DNA of 64,000 nt from Piromyces finnis finn. Lineage: Eukaryota > Fungi > Neocallimastigomycota. Position numbers and translations under genes: made by a program. How positions within the stretch are numbered: position 1 is the stretch's first letter; each line of letters opens with the position of its first letter. The notes under the pieces were generated by a model. That model saw nothing but the letters and a program-made list of their open reading frames with translations, ran no database searches and was not told the DNA's origin. Shown here in pieces: positions 29,942 through 62,850 of the stretch. The DNA lies in NCBI GenBank assembly GCA_002104945.1, contig MCFH01000097.1, positions 31,046 to 95,045 of the forward strand, read 5' to 3'.

Positions 29942-30532
29942 TGATAAGTGTTTAATATTATCTTTATTTATAATTAAATAATTATAAAAGTGATAATATT
30001 CTTATCAATTTATATAAAAAAAAAGATTTAAAATAAATTTTTATTATAAAGTTATTTGAAATATTTTAATTCGACATAACGATTATTAACAAAATATAAA
30101 AGTTATGTTTTAAAAACACAATTTTAAAATATATTTTTGAATCAACTCTTTATTTAATACATTTATTAAAAGTATTGATTGATTTTTAAATTAGGAAATA
30201 ATTACATGTATTTATAATTTTCTTTCTGTTTTAACTTTTTAAAATAAAATATTAATGTTTTAAAATAATAATGAATAATAAATAAAAGAAACAATTTATT
30301 TTAAAGTAATTAATTTAATTAATATAACACTATTTTACTATTTAAAATGTTATTTATACTATGTTTATTTTATAACAAAAATATAATTTAAACTGAGTTT
30401 TAATAAATAATTTTTATACTTTTAATTAAACATTTAAATATTATTATTATTTATTACTTATTTTTAAGTTGTTTTGAGGGTTAGTTTATATCAAGATTAT
30501 AATTTCATATTTATTAATTTCATTATTTATCA
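29942..30532 (-). mobile_element. Diverged LTR-2-related LTR
   Basis: Starts TGATAAG and ends with the LTR-2 terminus ATTTATTAATTTCATTATTTATCA; interior is diverged. Confidence 0.6.
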
Positions 30533-30534
30533 TA

Positions 30535-31365
30535 TGTAATAATTATTATATATTTAATAATAATTATTATCTACAATATAATAATACAAATCGTAATATG
30601 TATTATTAAATTGAGAAGTTTCTTAATAGTAAATAAAAATGAATACTTATCTTAAAGAGTTTATTATAAGTGAATTATAATAACAAACACAAAATATTAA
30701 GACTATCTTTAATGTAAATATTTTTTATGAATATAGTTTTTGAAAGGGTTATTTATTATAATTGTCTTAAAATAATAACTCTGGATTCTTTAGTGGAATT
30801 CCAGAGTCCTTATATTTATAATTTTTTGATAATTTAAAGTTTAATAAAGGATTTCTAATCTTAACAAATAATCTTTTTAGGAAAAGACTAGAAGAAAAAC
30901 CTAAAAAGATATTCGATTGATAACTAATATATCAATCATCGTAATATTAAGTAAAACCGATTAAAATTCGGAAAAACCTTAATATCCGATTGTCCTAATA
31001 TGTATTTATATTTTCTAATTGTTTCTATAAGTTATTTCAAGATACGATACATAAATATAAAATACAAACGTAAAATAAAATATATAATGTTTCTTATAAA
31101 ATGTAATACAAAAATTATTAATTAAAAAATAAATGAATGTTTACTATTATTTTAAATATATTACTAAATTAAATAAATAAATAATTAATATAGTAATTAA
31201 ATAAATTTTAAATTAAGTAAATGAATAATTAATATCAATATAGATAAATGTTTATAGTAATTTAAATGAATGTATGCTAATAGTTTAAATAAATAATTAA
31301 TTTAATAATTAAAAAATAATTAAATAAGAATTAATTTATACAAAAAATAATTATTAATTCTTACA
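30535..31365 (-). mobile_element. Solo LTR family C (E4-related), TSD TCATA, 17 nt upstream of tRNA-Gly
   Basis: TGTAAT...TTCTTACA; shares TTAGGAAAAGACTAGAAGAAAAACCTAAA with the E4 LTR; TCATA at 30530-30534 and 31366-31370. Confidence 0.88.
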
Positions 31366-31382
31366 TCATATTAACATATGAG

Positions 31383-31453
31383 GCGTTAATAGTATAGAGG
31401 TAGAATATTTGCCTTCCAAGCAAATGGCCCGGGTTCGATTCCCGGTTAACGCA
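31383..31453 (+). tRNA. tRNA-Gly(TCC)
   Basis: Acceptor GCGTTAA/TTAACGC, anticodon arm TTTGC-CTTCCAA-GCAAA, GGTTCGATTCC, downstream T-run. Confidence 0.96.
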
Positions 31454-31536
31454 TAAATATTTTTTAAAAAATTCAAATTCCTATTGGATAGTTTTTTTTT
31501 TTTTTTTTTGTAAATCATAATTAATTTTGCATAATA

Positions 31537-31917
31537 GACTCACCTCCAATTCTCCTTAAGGATAATATTTCAAAACTTTCTAGTGACTGGGATTCTCATT
31601 TTGATGGTTTAAAAGCCCACTTAGTCAAAGCTAAAGAAGATTTCAAGAAATTCGGTAATCCAAAAAAATCTACTGGTTCTGACTTTAAAGTGAATGACAT
31701 GGTTTAACTAAAGAGATACTATTTTTCCAATGAACCTTCTAAAAAATTATCTTCACAATATTTAGGGCTATTTAAAATCATTGAGAAGAGGGAAAGAATG
31801 AATAACCACCTGGAGTTGCCAGAAAACTTACACCTTCAACCTATATTTCATATCTCACAATTAGAACCATGTGTAAAAAGGAATCCTGAACTTAAAGAAT
31901 CATTTGAAGAGGAGCAA
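31537..31917 (+). pseudogene. E4-family integrase C-terminal fragment with an internal stop
   Basis: Translates DSPPILLKDN...KAKEDFKKFG...KRYYFSNEPSKKLSSQYLG, matching the E4 pol end; followed by GAGGAGCAA PPT and an LTR start at 31918. Confidence 0.85.
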
Positions 31918-32320
31918 TGTAAGAATTAATATTAAATTACTTAATATTCATTCTTAGTTATATTATGTAATTAAACATTATATAAAAATTTATTGAATTT
32001 ATTTAATATATATTTATTTATTCATTAATATAATATAGTAAGTTTACTTAATGCATTAACTACTTATTCATTTAATTACATTATAAATATTTATTTAAAA
32101 TATATTTATTCATTCATTTAAATAATATAGTAAATTTATTTAATACATTGGTTTTACGTATATTTAGTTTAATTAATAGTATTTATTTAGAGATTAATAA
32201 TCCATTTCCATTTATTTATTTATTAGTAAAATTATTATACAAAAATTTCACAAATTATAAATTATGTAACATTTTATTTTATTTTATTTTATTTTATTTT
32301 ATTTTATTTTATTTTATTTT
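31918..32320 (+). mobile_element. Truncated LTR family C ending in (TTTTA)n
   Basis: TGTAAGAATT start, same as 57181. Confidence 0.75.
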
Positions 32321-59908: not shown

Positions 59909-60667
59909 TGGAAAGGGTTAAGAATCACAAGGATTCGATTTTCAATAAATTAACCCTTATGCAAAATATACAATATATGAAAACAATAATAACTTCCGAA
60001 TATTGCGTCCTATTTCCGTTTTCTAGGGACGTCAAATTAGTTTTGTTAGAAAGTACTAGTTAAAACTTATATACTCACAAATATTCACAAAAATTCTCCA
60101 TTATTATTAAATAAGGTTAGATAATAATTACTCTTAATTTCAAATCTAATCAATCAATTATAAAAATTAATTAGTATTTATTTTAAATAATTTCTGGCTA
60201 ATAACCTCAATAATCAAAATCAAATAAAATCAAAAATCATTATGGTCAAAAGTAATTAATAATAATTATTAATTAATTAATCATCATAAAAATATATAAT
60301 TTGTATCATTAATTTCTATTCTCGATTGAGAATACTAAATATTTACAATTTAATATGGTTAAAACAATACTTTTTATTTAAAAGTAATTTTAAAGATTAA
60401 TCTTAAGAGCTATCATATGAATTCATATCAATATCAATTATTAATATTATTTTAATAATCAAATCATTAATAAATGAAATTTATAAATAATCATATTAAA
60501 TAAAAAGGTTTTAATTATAAAATCATTTAATTATAAATTCGTATTATTATTATTATTTAAATTCTTTAATCGTTTTAAAGAAGAAGTTTAATAATAAATA
60601 AATTTAATATTTTAATTATTGAATTAAGTTATAAGTTATAATAAAGAAACGCTCTGACCAAGTTACA
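59909..60667 (-). mobile_element. F-related LTR with adjacent PPT
   Basis: TGGAAAGGGTTA start resembles 52424; minus strand GGGAGAGATA then TGTAAC at 60667. Confidence 0.5.
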
Positions 60668-60694
60668 TATCTCTCCCAAGCCCTCCCACTTTAC

Positions 60695-61200
60695 AGTGAT
60701 AATATCTATATCTAAAATTTAATAAATAAATTATTAAAAATAAATAAACTTTTTCATTTACCAAGTCTTTGTTAGTTTTTTTTAAAATATAATTTTATTT
60801 TATTCAAGTATAAAATTTTAATATTTAATAACTCTTGCATTATTAAATATTTATATACTATTAATTGATACACCTTGTATGTATGTAAAATATAATTATA
60901 AATATTATTAACATAAATTTATATCCAATTTTACTGGATTATTAGGAACATTTTTTTAAATAAACTAATTCTATCACTATTATACATTTATACTATTTTA
61001 GAGTGTTATATTAATATTTTAAAATAGATAATTAATAAACAAATGAAAAAAAAATAATTCTTGTTTACATTTATAATTTTAAAACTAATGATTTATATAT
61101 AAATATTTTAATACTAATTTAATTACTTTTAATCTGTGTTTAAAATAATTTCATTATAATAATATATTTAATTTATAAATTTAATTATTTATTATTTGTG
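60695..61200 (-). mobile_element. LTR family D, partial
   Basis: AGTGATAATATCT...; homologous to ~42010-42490. Confidence 0.6.
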
Positions 61201-62113
61201 AACATGTAACAAACAGAAAATACTATATTTAGTATAAATTCCAGGTCATGTCACGAATACTAGTTGAAGTTGTGAAATTACTTTTGAAATATTAAAAAAA
61301 TTAATATTTATCAAATTTTAAAAAATACAAAACAATATTGGTAAATATTAAAATTAAAGTAATACGATCTTAACACTCTATAAAGGTTATTATAAACACC
61401 TTTAGCCCTTAAGACCATAATTTAATAACAAAAATCATTCATAGCTCGACAACGAATGTTGGTTTTTTGATGAAATTATCTTTGATGAAACCACGTTCAT
61501 TAGAAAGCCACGAGCATGATATCTTCCTGGTTTGCGAGATACCGTGTTTAACAATTTTTATGCACAAATGATTATTGATAATTCAGAGAATGATCACTTC
61601 TGATGTATCACTCATAAATCATTCTGTAAAACTAAATTATCTTTCCAATTTAATCCTCGGGAAATAATAACTTCATTTTATAATAATTATTTCAATAAAA
61701 TATAAAATATTTCATAATCTTTGAATTAAAAAATTATACTATTTTTAACTATAAATAATTATTTATATAATAGTTAGTATTATTAATATTATTAATATCT
61801 AGTTAACAAATTATATTTTATTTTTATGTTTAGTTTAGTATTATTAAATATGTTATGAAAACAAATTATGTATCGAAAGTTATTTTATTATTAAATTAAA
61901 TTTTACAAAGAATATAAATAGTTTAGTTAAATTCATAAAATTAATTCTTTATAAAGATTATTATTATTATTATTATTATTATTATATTATTATTATTATT
62001 ATTATTATTACTATTATTATTATTATTATTATTATTACTATTATTATTATTATTATTATTATTATTATTATTATTATATTATTATTATTATTATTATTAT
62101 TATTATTATTATT

Positions 62114-62754
62114 AGGTCATAATGCTCTAACCCTACTTATTAATAACATTATTTTAAACACAAATAAATAATTAAATTAGTACTAAAGTATTTATATAAA
62201 TTATTAATTTTAAAATTATAAATGTAAACAAGAAACTACTTATTTATTTATTAATTAATTAAATAGCTAATTAATTGTTTATTAATATAATACTTTAAAA
62301 TACTATAAATGTATAAATAGTGTTAGAATTACTTTATTTTAAAAATTGTTCCTAATAATCCGTCAAAATTAGATATATTATATTAAATTTATTAAATGGT
62401 TCCTAATAATCCAGTAAAATAGATATATAATTTATATAAAATAATATTTGTAATTATAATAATACACATACGAGATGTATTGAATAATAATAATATATAT
62501 ATATTTAATAATACAAGAGTTATTAAATATTAAAACTTTATAATTAAATAAAATAAATTTATATTTTTAACTAACAAGGACTTGCAAATGAACAAATAAA
62601 ATAAATTTATATTTTAAATTAACAAAGATTTTCAAATGAACAAGTATAAAAATCATTTATTATTTTTTTTTTTATTTCTATTTATTAAATTTTAGATACA
62701 GATTGTCACTTTCTATATTCATTTATAGAATTAAGGTAATATCATACCATAACA
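62114..62754 (+). mobile_element. LTR family D ending 24 nt upstream of tRNA-Trp
   Basis: Ends TAGAATTAAGGTAATATCATACCATAACA; preceded by (ATT)n at 61958-62113. Confidence 0.7.
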
Positions 62755-62778
62755 AAATTAATAGAAGTCAATGAAGTG

Positions 62779-62850
62779 GGAGGGTTGGCGCAACGGTAGC
62801 GCGTCCGCCTCCAGAGCGGAAGGTTGGGTGTTCGAATCACTCACTCTCCA
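62779..62850 (+). tRNA. tRNA-Trp(CCA)
   Basis: Identical to 43441-43512; flanks differ. Confidence 0.95.

Follow-up and report, generated by a model that had tools for sequence, protein, structure and literature searches.

In a 64,000-nt stretch of the genome of the anaerobic fungus Piromyces finnis (contig MCFH01000097.1, positions 31,046 to 95,045, or G000:C230:31046-95045; hereafter the window) the long terminal repeats (LTRs) of several retroelement families end at narrow, family-specific distances upstream of tRNA genes, and the same distances recur across the whole assembly (56.46 Mb, 232 contigs). Three registers can be distinguished: a proximal one 11-19 nt from the mature tRNA, a middle one near 30 nt and a distal one near 66 nt. 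The analysis makes it very probable that Ty3/gypsy families occupy these registers and that their integration is directed by the RNA polymerase III (Pol III) complex, as for Ty3. Below, contigs of the assembly (G000) are cited by C numbers, sampled loci by L numbers and LTR families by letters.

Positions of LTR termini upstream of tRNA genes

ARAGORN found ten tRNA genes in the window, all in its second half and identical to the set listed in a preceding interpretation made from the letters alone (the sequence-only reading). The tRNA 5′ ends were re-set by the U8/A14 rule; ARAGORN adds one base at some genes. All gaps and registers are counted from the mature tRNA 5′ end. Repeats in the window, whose G+C content is 12-38% per 2-kb bin (genome A+T ~83%), were mapped by dust-masked self-BLAST; a generic repeat finder was swamped by low-complexity DNA.

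Upstream of eight of the ten tRNA genes there are LTR termini, at distances of 13-24 nt, 62-68 nt or both (Table 1). The sequence-only reading had reported the same eight, with a Glu-Arg pair as the exception, and this result was unchanged with ARAGORN and corrected ends. Its three 17-nt gaps of family C (at tRNA-Gly 31383, initiator tRNA-Met and tRNA-Val) and its proximal gaps of 13, 14, 14, 22 and 24 nt were also reproduced. Six distal gaps had been claimed (62, 66, 66, ~66, 67 and 68 nt): those of 62, 66 and 68 nt lie beside tRNA genes, the other three could not be placed at tRNA-adjacent sites of the window. The earlier family labels mixed unrelated LTRs; the earlier list of registers was right about the proximal and distal ones and lacked the one near 30 nt. 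The Glu-Arg pair (45625-45779) has no LTR within 100 nt upstream. This exception appears incidental, since other Glu-Arg pairs have LTRs at 11 and 15 nt.

The two tRNA-Gly loci of the window are paralogous (in self-BLAST 29126-29946 and 31347-32473 match 55827-57718). At the 31383 locus two extra LTRs (29940-30532 and LTR-C) lie exactly between LTR-A and the tRNA gene, thus the two loci represent the filled and the empty version of one site. LTR-C (30535-31365) is flanked by the 5-bp target-site duplication (TSD) TCATA at 30530-30534 and 31366-31370. Before its insertion the LTR at 29940-30532, the last 3 nt of which fall within the target duplication of LTR-C, was 14 nt from the tRNA.

For the genome-wide analysis tRNA coordinates were obtained with a B-box pattern and the Rfam tRNA model, and 116 mini-loci (190-440 nt), 30 loci around LTR-A copies and one 10-kb piece were read. 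Second members of dicistronic pairs were re-anchored on the first gene and contexts with a common 40-nt flank were merged, which left 79 independent upstream contexts. A recognisable LTR terminus was present 11-24 nt upstream in 60 of the 79 (whole assembly), and about five more had degenerate ends. Downstream, no repeat boundary was found within 200 nt of any of the 19 tRNA genes with long flanks. Composite patterns consisting of an LTR end, a variable gap (30-56 nt allowed) and the tRNA A-box, with a built-in reversed-pattern control, gave 10-42 genome matches compared to none for the reversed control, and the gaps bunched within a few nt.

The proximal gap depended on the family. The termini of H were found at 11-12 nt (n=8), V and W at 12 nt (n=3), E at 13-15 nt (n=4), P at 14-16 nt (n=8) and A at 14-16 nt (six of nine at 14); the group formed by A, P, E, R and F spans 13-16 nt, mostly 14. 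K was found at 15-16 nt (n=6), as were K and M together, C at 15-19 nt with a mode of 16-17 (n=8, including the pattern search), and C2, S and the other end of C at 15-18 nt (n=5). The family differences were significant overall (Kruskal-Wallis p=1e-6) and within tRNA-Arg-TCT alone (p=0.0017), as well as between H and A (p=3e-4) and between A and C (p=1.5e-3). On one native tRNA-Gly flank four families end at different distances (H 12, A 14, M 15, C 17 nt), and on shared Arg flank sub-types the H end is 2 nt nearer to the tRNA than the end of E, A or P. Because gap and target sequences differ among loci, the pattern is positional and not sequence-based, in agreement with the sequence-only reading. 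The proximal families are 1-5 nt apart and overlap; a single Ty3-like window with sub-registers describes them better. A histogram of CA dinucleotides made without regard to family also peaked at 11-17 nt (49 counts in 350 observations, 3.6% background), but it was not relied on because its other peaks are internal CA dinucleotides of shared LTRs.

The distal register was searched with a pattern of LTR end, 40-95 free bases and tRNA A-box. There were 42 matches for family G and 38 for G2, and none for the reversed-pattern control. After removal of duplicates 25 of 27 G and 24 of 29 G2 cases (49 of 56 jointly) had a match length of 95-101, which equals 62-69 nt from the tRNA. For this 7-nt band within the 56 nt allowed the binomial p is 7e-21 (G) and 1e-17 (G2). 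Directly measured distal gaps were 62-67 nt. The remaining G2 cases lie at ~72-77 nt, and several of them show 51-nt stubs followed by longer proximal gaps. Two more terminal families occupy the distal register, one at the L144 locus, the other in the LTR upstream of the elongator tRNA-Met in the window. The DNA upstream of this tRNA-Met recurs in the genome in at least 40 copies (93-99%), every one of which stops at query position 352, that is, at window position 49549. The 51 nt in between (49498-49548) resemble a proximal stub ending 17 nt from the tRNA, and match no family.

The interval separating a distal terminus from its tRNA nearly always contains the remnant of an older proximal LTR: distal insertions truncate older proximal LTRs to ~50-nt stubs. 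The stub is variable (37-54 nt; composites such as 36+16), while the distance from the tRNA is constant (stub plus gap of 37+30, 36+16+14 or 54+12 nt). In the window the stub at 43379-43427 has 48-nt matches (92-96%) to the same LTR end at five other loci, and the stub at 52246-52289 matches positions 1-45 of over 30 LTR-A copies at 98%.

The middle register is occupied by family Y, with gaps of 28, 30, 30, 31 and 31 nt; the stubs left by Y are 14-17 nt long. One tRNA-Ala gene (L097) has all three registers, at 14, 31 and 67 nt. At L138 (G000 C184:47298-47488) a Y LTR lies 28 nt upstream of tRNA-Arg and the paired tRNA-Glu is cut to its last ~18 nt, hence targeting destroyed the tRNA-Glu gene of a Glu-Arg pair. 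The suggestion of the sequence-only reading that at least three gypsy lineages partition the Pol III upstream region is supported, as differing registers recur genome-wide, also at the same tRNA species and flank.

The orientation of the insertions was deduced from three features. The A pol gene ends 18 nt from the tRNA-facing LTR end, the tRNA-facing end of C adjoins the polypurine tract (inner side of the 3′ LTR), and the open frames of G2 run away from the tRNA-facing end. The tRNA-facing end is therefore the U3 start, i.e. the 5′ end of the element. G2 gave 38 U3-end and no U5-end matches, A about eight true U3-end matches and none for the opposite end. The window has one inverted copy of A, which lies at tRNA-Arg at 22 nt rather than 14. 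The C group occurs in both orientations, as represented by C2 in the window and by the other end of C elsewhere in the genome.

Copies away from tRNA genes and alternative explanations

LTR copies remote from tRNA genes are stacked, in head-to-tail order. Only three of the 30 sampled LTR-A copies are at a tRNA, and none of the 30 is in unique non-repeat DNA. On the outward flanks of these copies (sides facing their own interior were excluded) the neighbour is another repeat no more than 10 nt away in 42 cases, a Y terminus at 19-20 nt in two and a tRNA in three; three flanks resemble LTR starts without a match in the small LTR library. The flanks of family C gave the same picture. The spacer between A and the older LTR is 1 nt for H, 4-5 nt for E, R and F, 5 nt for K and M, 6 nt for C and S, and 20 nt for Y. 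Younger register-12 families lie 7 nt beyond the A end, as predicted (14-12+5). The spacers thus track the differences between registers, which is expected from repeated insertion at a fixed distance from one tRNA, unlike targeting of LTR ends.

The proposition that the elements target resident LTR termini or ends, with the tRNA association being secondary to old LTRs lying there, has some appeal, as nearly all A and C copies abut another LTR terminus within 1-10 nt and distal elements are almost always ~50 nt inside another LTR. We nevertheless consider it very unlikely. The distance from the tRNA stays constant though the length and make-up of the stub vary, whereas the spacer between A and the older LTR varies between 1 and 20 nt with the register of the older family. 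The same registers are found on native flanks of many tRNA species. The apparent stub at the elongator tRNA-Met fits no family, the Y insertion at L138 cuts a tRNA-Glu gene and not an LTR, and a putative Pol III gene of 190 nt (see below) is also hit.

Alternatively, integration could be only loosely directed, to AT-rich intergenic DNA, and the observed copies could be safe-site survivors left upstream of tRNA genes by selection or retention. In compact genomes the DNA preceding tRNA genes is known to serve as a safe haven (PMC5006619), and insertions closer than ~11 nt would probably harm the gene. Selection, however, cannot yield peaks 1-3 nt wide at 12, 14, 17, 30 and 66 nt with empty space between them, nor can it yield family-specific offsets at identical flanks or a near-absolute orientation bias. 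Many copies are 99-100% identical, so there was little time for purging, and the downstream flanks, which are equally safe, are empty. We regard this explanation as highly improbable.

Recurring distances might also come from segmental duplication of a few modules of tRNA plus LTR instead of independent insertions. Duplicated modules do exist (identical flanks shared by contig pairs, tandem arrays repeating every 5.57 kb, four paralogues of the Arg locus of the window). But after merging of the duplicates sharing 40-nt flanks the registers recur at other tRNA species, with other gap sequences and other stub families; copies at a given register do not all have the same flank beyond the tRNA, and one tRNA-Gly site is present in the window in two paralogous versions, filled and empty, with a clean TSD. 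Duplication as the general cause is hardly credible. Just as little credence can be given to a short DNA motif, rather than a protein complex, as the target: the gaps are A-rich and some tRNA families have common flank sub-types, but target duplications and gap sequences vary widely between tRNA species, and at ~83% A+T such a motif would be everywhere, yet unique non-repeat DNA contained none of the 30 LTR-A copies examined.

Several observations weigh against integration directed by the Pol III complex at three registers. Only a minority of the copies are at a tRNA (family C: about 10 of at least 52 exact termini; G2: about 36 of 203), and the remaining copies would be accounted for by displacement, as suggested by the structure of the stacks. 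The arithmetic of the spacers fits within 1-2 nt only, and there is overlap between proximal sub-registers, as between A (14-16) and C (15-19). Some gaps measure 22-24 nt: both tRNA-Glu-CTC genes have a gap of 22 nt, and tRNA-Arg and tRNA-Trp of the window also belong here. The two tRNA-Glu-CTC genes suggest that the ruler is something other than the mature 5′ end. The terminal motifs that define the LTR families were taken from the very data analysed, only about ten tRNA species are represented in the sample, and the proposed link between the registers and TFIIIB derives from the Ty3 analogy and from geometry. Finally, the four 5S rRNA genes examined had no LTR, but they are inside identical repeat units. 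Only five 5S matches were scored, of which three are spaced by 8,534 nt on a single contig (G000 C153:5379-22565; the others at C8:52266 and C188:320494). Four of the 5S upstream regions share an identical 110-nt sequence, thus these genes are probably parts of a larger repeat unit (~8.5 kb).

Element types and further features

Internal sequence was read for A, C/C2 and G2; H, K, M, P, E, Y, G and the others are known from their termini. In Pfam searches C2 (36161-41713), A (15431-19204) and G2 (L108) showed the order protease, reverse transcriptase (RT), RNase H and integrase, with gag upstream, which identifies them as Ty3/gypsy elements. Protein identities define at least two clades: A and element 1 of the window on one side, C2, G2 and the chromovirus at 19494-26383 on the other. 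In RT and integrase identity C2 and G2 are closest to this chromovirus, which is not at a tRNA and serves as an untargeted comparator. The best solved relative was the Ty3 polyprotein 7q5b (E=1.4e-81 for C2, 1.6e-37 for G2); for A the match was weaker (1.6e-25) and ranked below a foamy-virus integrase. C2 and A lack a chromodomain, their proteins stop right after the SH3-like domain. In G2 Pfam did not detect a chromodomain even at E values up to 10, and the part of the chromovirus that holds the chromodomain can be aligned to the 80-residue tail of G2. A strong canonical chromodomain (Pfam 2e-17) was seen in an integrase C-terminus at L016:3189-3809 (minus strand) beside an LTR-A/H stack; a link between family H and this neighbouring open reading frame was sought, with no match.

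Family C has at least 40 genome copies, many of them 100% identical, and its full-length copies have 100% identical LTRs 5.3 kb apart; L031 contains an open frame of 1026 amino acids. The two LTRs of C2 (36161-36365 and 41509-41713) are 99.5% identical. G2 has 203 exact termini, many in pairs 6.4 kb apart. The full-length G2 in L108 encodes gag, RT, RNase H and an integrase whose C-terminal domain is SH3-like; this copy lies inside an E-type LTR, between the two halves of the 5-bp duplication ATCAC. All families read have TG...CA ends, and the inner LTR boundary of C2 is non-canonical. A TSD of the C2 element was sought and not found, and the same applies to exact TSDs of the stacked LTR-A copies.

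The coordinates of the tRNA genes and of the elements associated with them are listed in Table 1.

Table 1. tRNA genes, LTRs and retroelement genes of the window (window positions)
Feature	Position	Strand	Remarks
LTR-A, further copies	13984-14767, 54147-54914, 55827-56630		
Family-A pol	15431..19204	-	99.4% amino acid identity (RNase H + integrase) to genome A copies
Chromovirus ('element 3')	19494..26383	+	Canonical chromodomain (Pfam Chromo 1.8e-08); LTRs 100% identical; TSD TCATT
LTR family A	29127..29938	-	Self-BLAST and genome search; at least 40 genome copies, 98-99% identity
LTR with family-A-like end	29940..30532	.	From sequence reading; 'D' of the sequence-only reading
Solo LTR, family C	30535..31365	-	17 nt upstream of tRNA-Gly 31383; U3 start faces tRNA
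tRNA-Gly(TCC)	31383..31453	+	ARAGORN; target 1, filled site; paralogue of 56645 gene with same 14-nt native flank
C-like LTR	33185..34222	.	End 17 nt upstream of initiator tRNA-Met; 46-nt tandem expansion
Initiator tRNA-Met	34240..34311	+	ARAGORN; target 2
tRNA-Val(TAC)	36071..36143	-	Target 3; ARAGORN one base too long at each end
Full-length Ty3/gypsy element C2	36161..41713	-	3′ end 17 nt from tRNA-Val
G-like distal LTR	42780..43378	+	End 62 nt upstream of tRNA-Trp 43441; start approximate
49-nt stub, F-type proximal LTR	43379..43427	+	Degenerate end 13 nt from tRNA-Trp 43441
tRNA-Trp(CCA)	43441..43512	+	ARAGORN; target 4
tRNA-Glu(TTC)/tRNA-Arg(TCT) pair, dicistronic	45625..45779	-	9-nt spacer
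Elongator tRNA-Met	49408..49480	-	ARAGORN; target 5
Distal-class LTR	49549..49900 and beyond	-	Terminus 68 nt upstream of elongator tRNA-Met
Second G2 LTR copy, partial	50202-50654		
tRNA-Arg(TCT)	52150..52223	-	ARAGORN; target 6
44-nt inverted stub of LTR-A (U5 end)	52246..52289	+	Terminus 22 nt from tRNA-Arg 52223
LTR family G2 (1 kb)	52290..53289	+	U3 start 66 nt upstream of tRNA-Arg 52223
LTR-A	55827..56630	-	End 14 nt upstream of tRNA-Gly 56645
tRNA-Gly(TCC)	56645..56715	+	Target 7, 'empty' paralogue with LTR-A only
E-type LTR	61957..62754	+	End 24 nt upstream of tRNA-Trp 62779; paralogous copy 32354 to ~33160
tRNA-Trp(CCA)	62779..62850	+	ARAGORN; target 8

The window contains four full-length Ty3/gypsy elements. 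Its tRNA-free part (1-29000) is a 29-kb pile of LTR elements, which includes three full-length ones, among them the chromovirus with 100% identical LTRs; this pile adjoins the stack upstream of tRNA-Gly 31383. Two termini of distal type, at 50202 and 61249, are displaced from any tRNA of the window. Element 1 (minus strand, 5′ LTR at 9307-9882) has its primer-binding site at 9277-9306, in which 17 nt are complementary to the CCA-bearing 3′ end of the elongator tRNA-Met whose gene is at 49408-49480. In family A the 5′ LTR is followed by TGGTCCTTCGAACCGGAG, which has no match to a full tRNA 3′ end.

Two kinds of tandem arrangement were seen. Families C and G2 occur as LTR-internal-LTR-internal arrays sharing LTRs (6.39-kb period for G2; G000 C5:50198-56374 and C35:69270-82061). 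In G000 C47, C74 and C79:834269-845503 there are arrays with a 5.57-kb period, in which the unit consists of a tRNA, a 52-nt LTR stub and a distal G LTR; here one insertion was amplified along with its target.

Close tRNA pairs are frequent: Glu-Arg (9-nt spacer), Gly-Thr and Ser-Met pairs were found at window 45625-45779 and at L109, L115-L117, L022, L122, L139 and L143. The paired genes are probably dicistronic, and the LTRs are upstream of the first member.

LTR termini were also found beside a GC-rich element of ~190 nt, which has a B-box-like motif and a terminal T-run. It was present in at least 21 sampled copies (L033-L107 with GGGTTCGAACCC, e.g. L041:100-330; also G000 C1:134574, C6:21060 and C15:23719) and had no Rfam match. 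Loci with a palindromic B-box, initially considered as tRNA genes, were rejected because they proved to be this element, which may be an undescribed Pol III RNA or a short interspersed element (SINE). LTR termini lie 6, 18-20 and ~57 nt upstream of its conserved start, nearly always with the same LTR at 6 nt, and further out there are sometimes Y or G termini. Each of these gaps is ~9-10 nt below the corresponding tRNA register. This would fit a ruler at the transcription start and is suggestive, the start of the RNA being assumed.

At four loci (G000 C156:912538, C205:35603, C224:13168 and C192:160461) family-C termini lie a few nt upstream of a conserved segment, with differing spacers. The segment has a 7-bp hairpin with a loop resembling the tRNA D-loop and is not called as a tRNA; the sequence downstream is nearly identical at three of the four loci and more diverged at the fourth. 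The hairpin segment may be another Pol III-type target. A GC-rich repeat starting with TATTTCGGGG or TACTTTGGGG was seen 4-5 nt beyond A and C termini (right flank of L006; G000 C24:139633, C52:15121, C59:6446 and C224:25799). It may be an LTR start or a small RNA gene.

Proposed mechanism and comparison with known systems

We propose that the ruler would be the TFIIIB/TFIIIC complex assembled on the gene, with different integrases docking on different faces of it. Register 1 comprises the proximal positions at 11-19 nt, with modes at 12 (H, V, W), 14 (A, P, E, R, F), 15-16 (K, M) and 16-17 nt (C group), register 2 the position of Y at ~28-31 nt, and register 3 that of G, G2 and the two further families at ~62-68 nt. 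The distal site would be located just past the upstream edge of TFIIIB. Proximal newcomers would insert between the tRNA and the older elements, whereas middle and distal newcomers would insert inside an older LTR. Older copies would thereby be shifted outward or trimmed to stubs of ~15 or ~50 nt, and this would build up head-to-tail stacks of LTRs beside tRNA genes.

Going further, we think it rather likely that related integrases evolved at least three docking geometries on one Pol III pre-initiation complex, placing insertions a few bp, ~20 bp and ~55 bp upstream of the start site. In this extended model the offsets would be tuned between families to the base at the first position, the third position would be beyond TFIIIB with fixed orientation and would be the first integrase-based distal counterpart of TRE5 type, and tRNA genes would organise stacks of tens of kb.

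Targeting of Pol III genes is the best-understood case of a retroelement choosing a safe landing site and a model for engineering site-directed integration. A dozen or more young families that read the same complex at sharp, distinct positions and with fixed polarity would form a natural comparative series, in which related integrases with different C-termini could be compared for what sets the ruler. The stacks seeded at tRNA genes would account for much of the repeat architecture of this genome, and Pol III-gene targeting would be extended to a fungal lineage outside the yeasts, one that is anaerobic and early-diverging. The sequence-only reading knew of no description of this phenomenon in anaerobic fungi, and our search of the literature library available found none either. 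Nor did it find a description of LTR elements at ~30 and ~66 nt, of fixed polarity, or of base-level offsets among many coexisting families.

The nearest of the three positions is classic Ty3 behaviour. Ty3-type insertion occurs 16-19 bp from the mature tRNA end. TBP and Brf1 act as the tether for the integrase of Ty3, and its insertions fall 1-4 bp upstream of the start site, which puts them ~15 bp from the mature tRNA (10.1101/2021.07.27.453949; PMC5006619; PMC5911963). The position is set by contacts of the integrase C-terminal domain and of a vestigial chromodomain with TBP and Brf1 (10.1101/2021.07.27.453949). The families described here share with Ty3, Ty3p, Tj1 of Schizosaccharomyces japonicus and Tyl3/Ylt1/Tyl6 of Yarrowia the Ty3/gypsy type, the 5-bp TSD, the proximal window and repeated insertion at the same gene. 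They differ from Ty3 in that the proximal window is shared by at least a dozen LTR families, whose offsets are 1-5 nt apart, and in that family A, and also G2, are strongly biased in orientation, whereas Ty3 inserts in both orientations. Moreover, family A belongs to a different, more distant gypsy clade, and C2 and A are without the vestigial chromodomain which Ty3 uses for its Brf1 contact.

DGLT-A of dictyostelids is likewise a gypsy-type LTR element without chromodomain, and inserts 13-33 bp (mean 15) upstream of the mature tRNA (PMC5006619). In contrast to DGLT-A, for which both orientations occur and of which little survives in D. discoideum (it is mostly extinct there), the families in Piromyces are young (99-100% identical) and several of them coexist. 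Skipper-2 of Dictyostelium is related to chromoviruses; its chromodomain has diverged, and tRNA genes have replaced heterochromatin as its target. G2 is similar to it in having a tail that aligns to the chromodomain region and is not recognised by Pfam, but Skipper-2 inserts downstream of tRNA genes and G2 66 nt upstream. Ty1, Ty2 and Ty4 of yeast also insert upstream of Pol III genes, past the TFIIIB footprint. These are copia-type elements spread over ~750 bp to 1 kb with nucleosomal periodicity, whereas the elements described here are of gypsy type with one far band of ~5 nt.

In the published survey LTR elements are found at the start-site position, downstream (Skipper-2) or in the broad Ty1 window only, and registers of 40-64 bp belong to the non-LTR elements TRE5 and NLTR-B (PMC5911963, Table 1). 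TRE5-A of Dictyostelium (40-54 bp) and NLTR-B of Polysphondylium (39-64 bp) are the closest parallels to the distal register, as counted from the mature tRNA end. The orientation of TRE5 is fixed, opposite to the tRNA, and fixed orientation is a feature it has in common with G2; the TRE5 ORF1 protein binds TFIIIB (PMC5911963). Unlike TRE5-A and NLTR-B, which are L1-type non-LTR elements using target-primed reverse transcription, G and G2 are LTR elements with an integrase, and they insert ~15 bp further out and in a narrower band. G2 works in a similar way without being a member of the TRE5 group.

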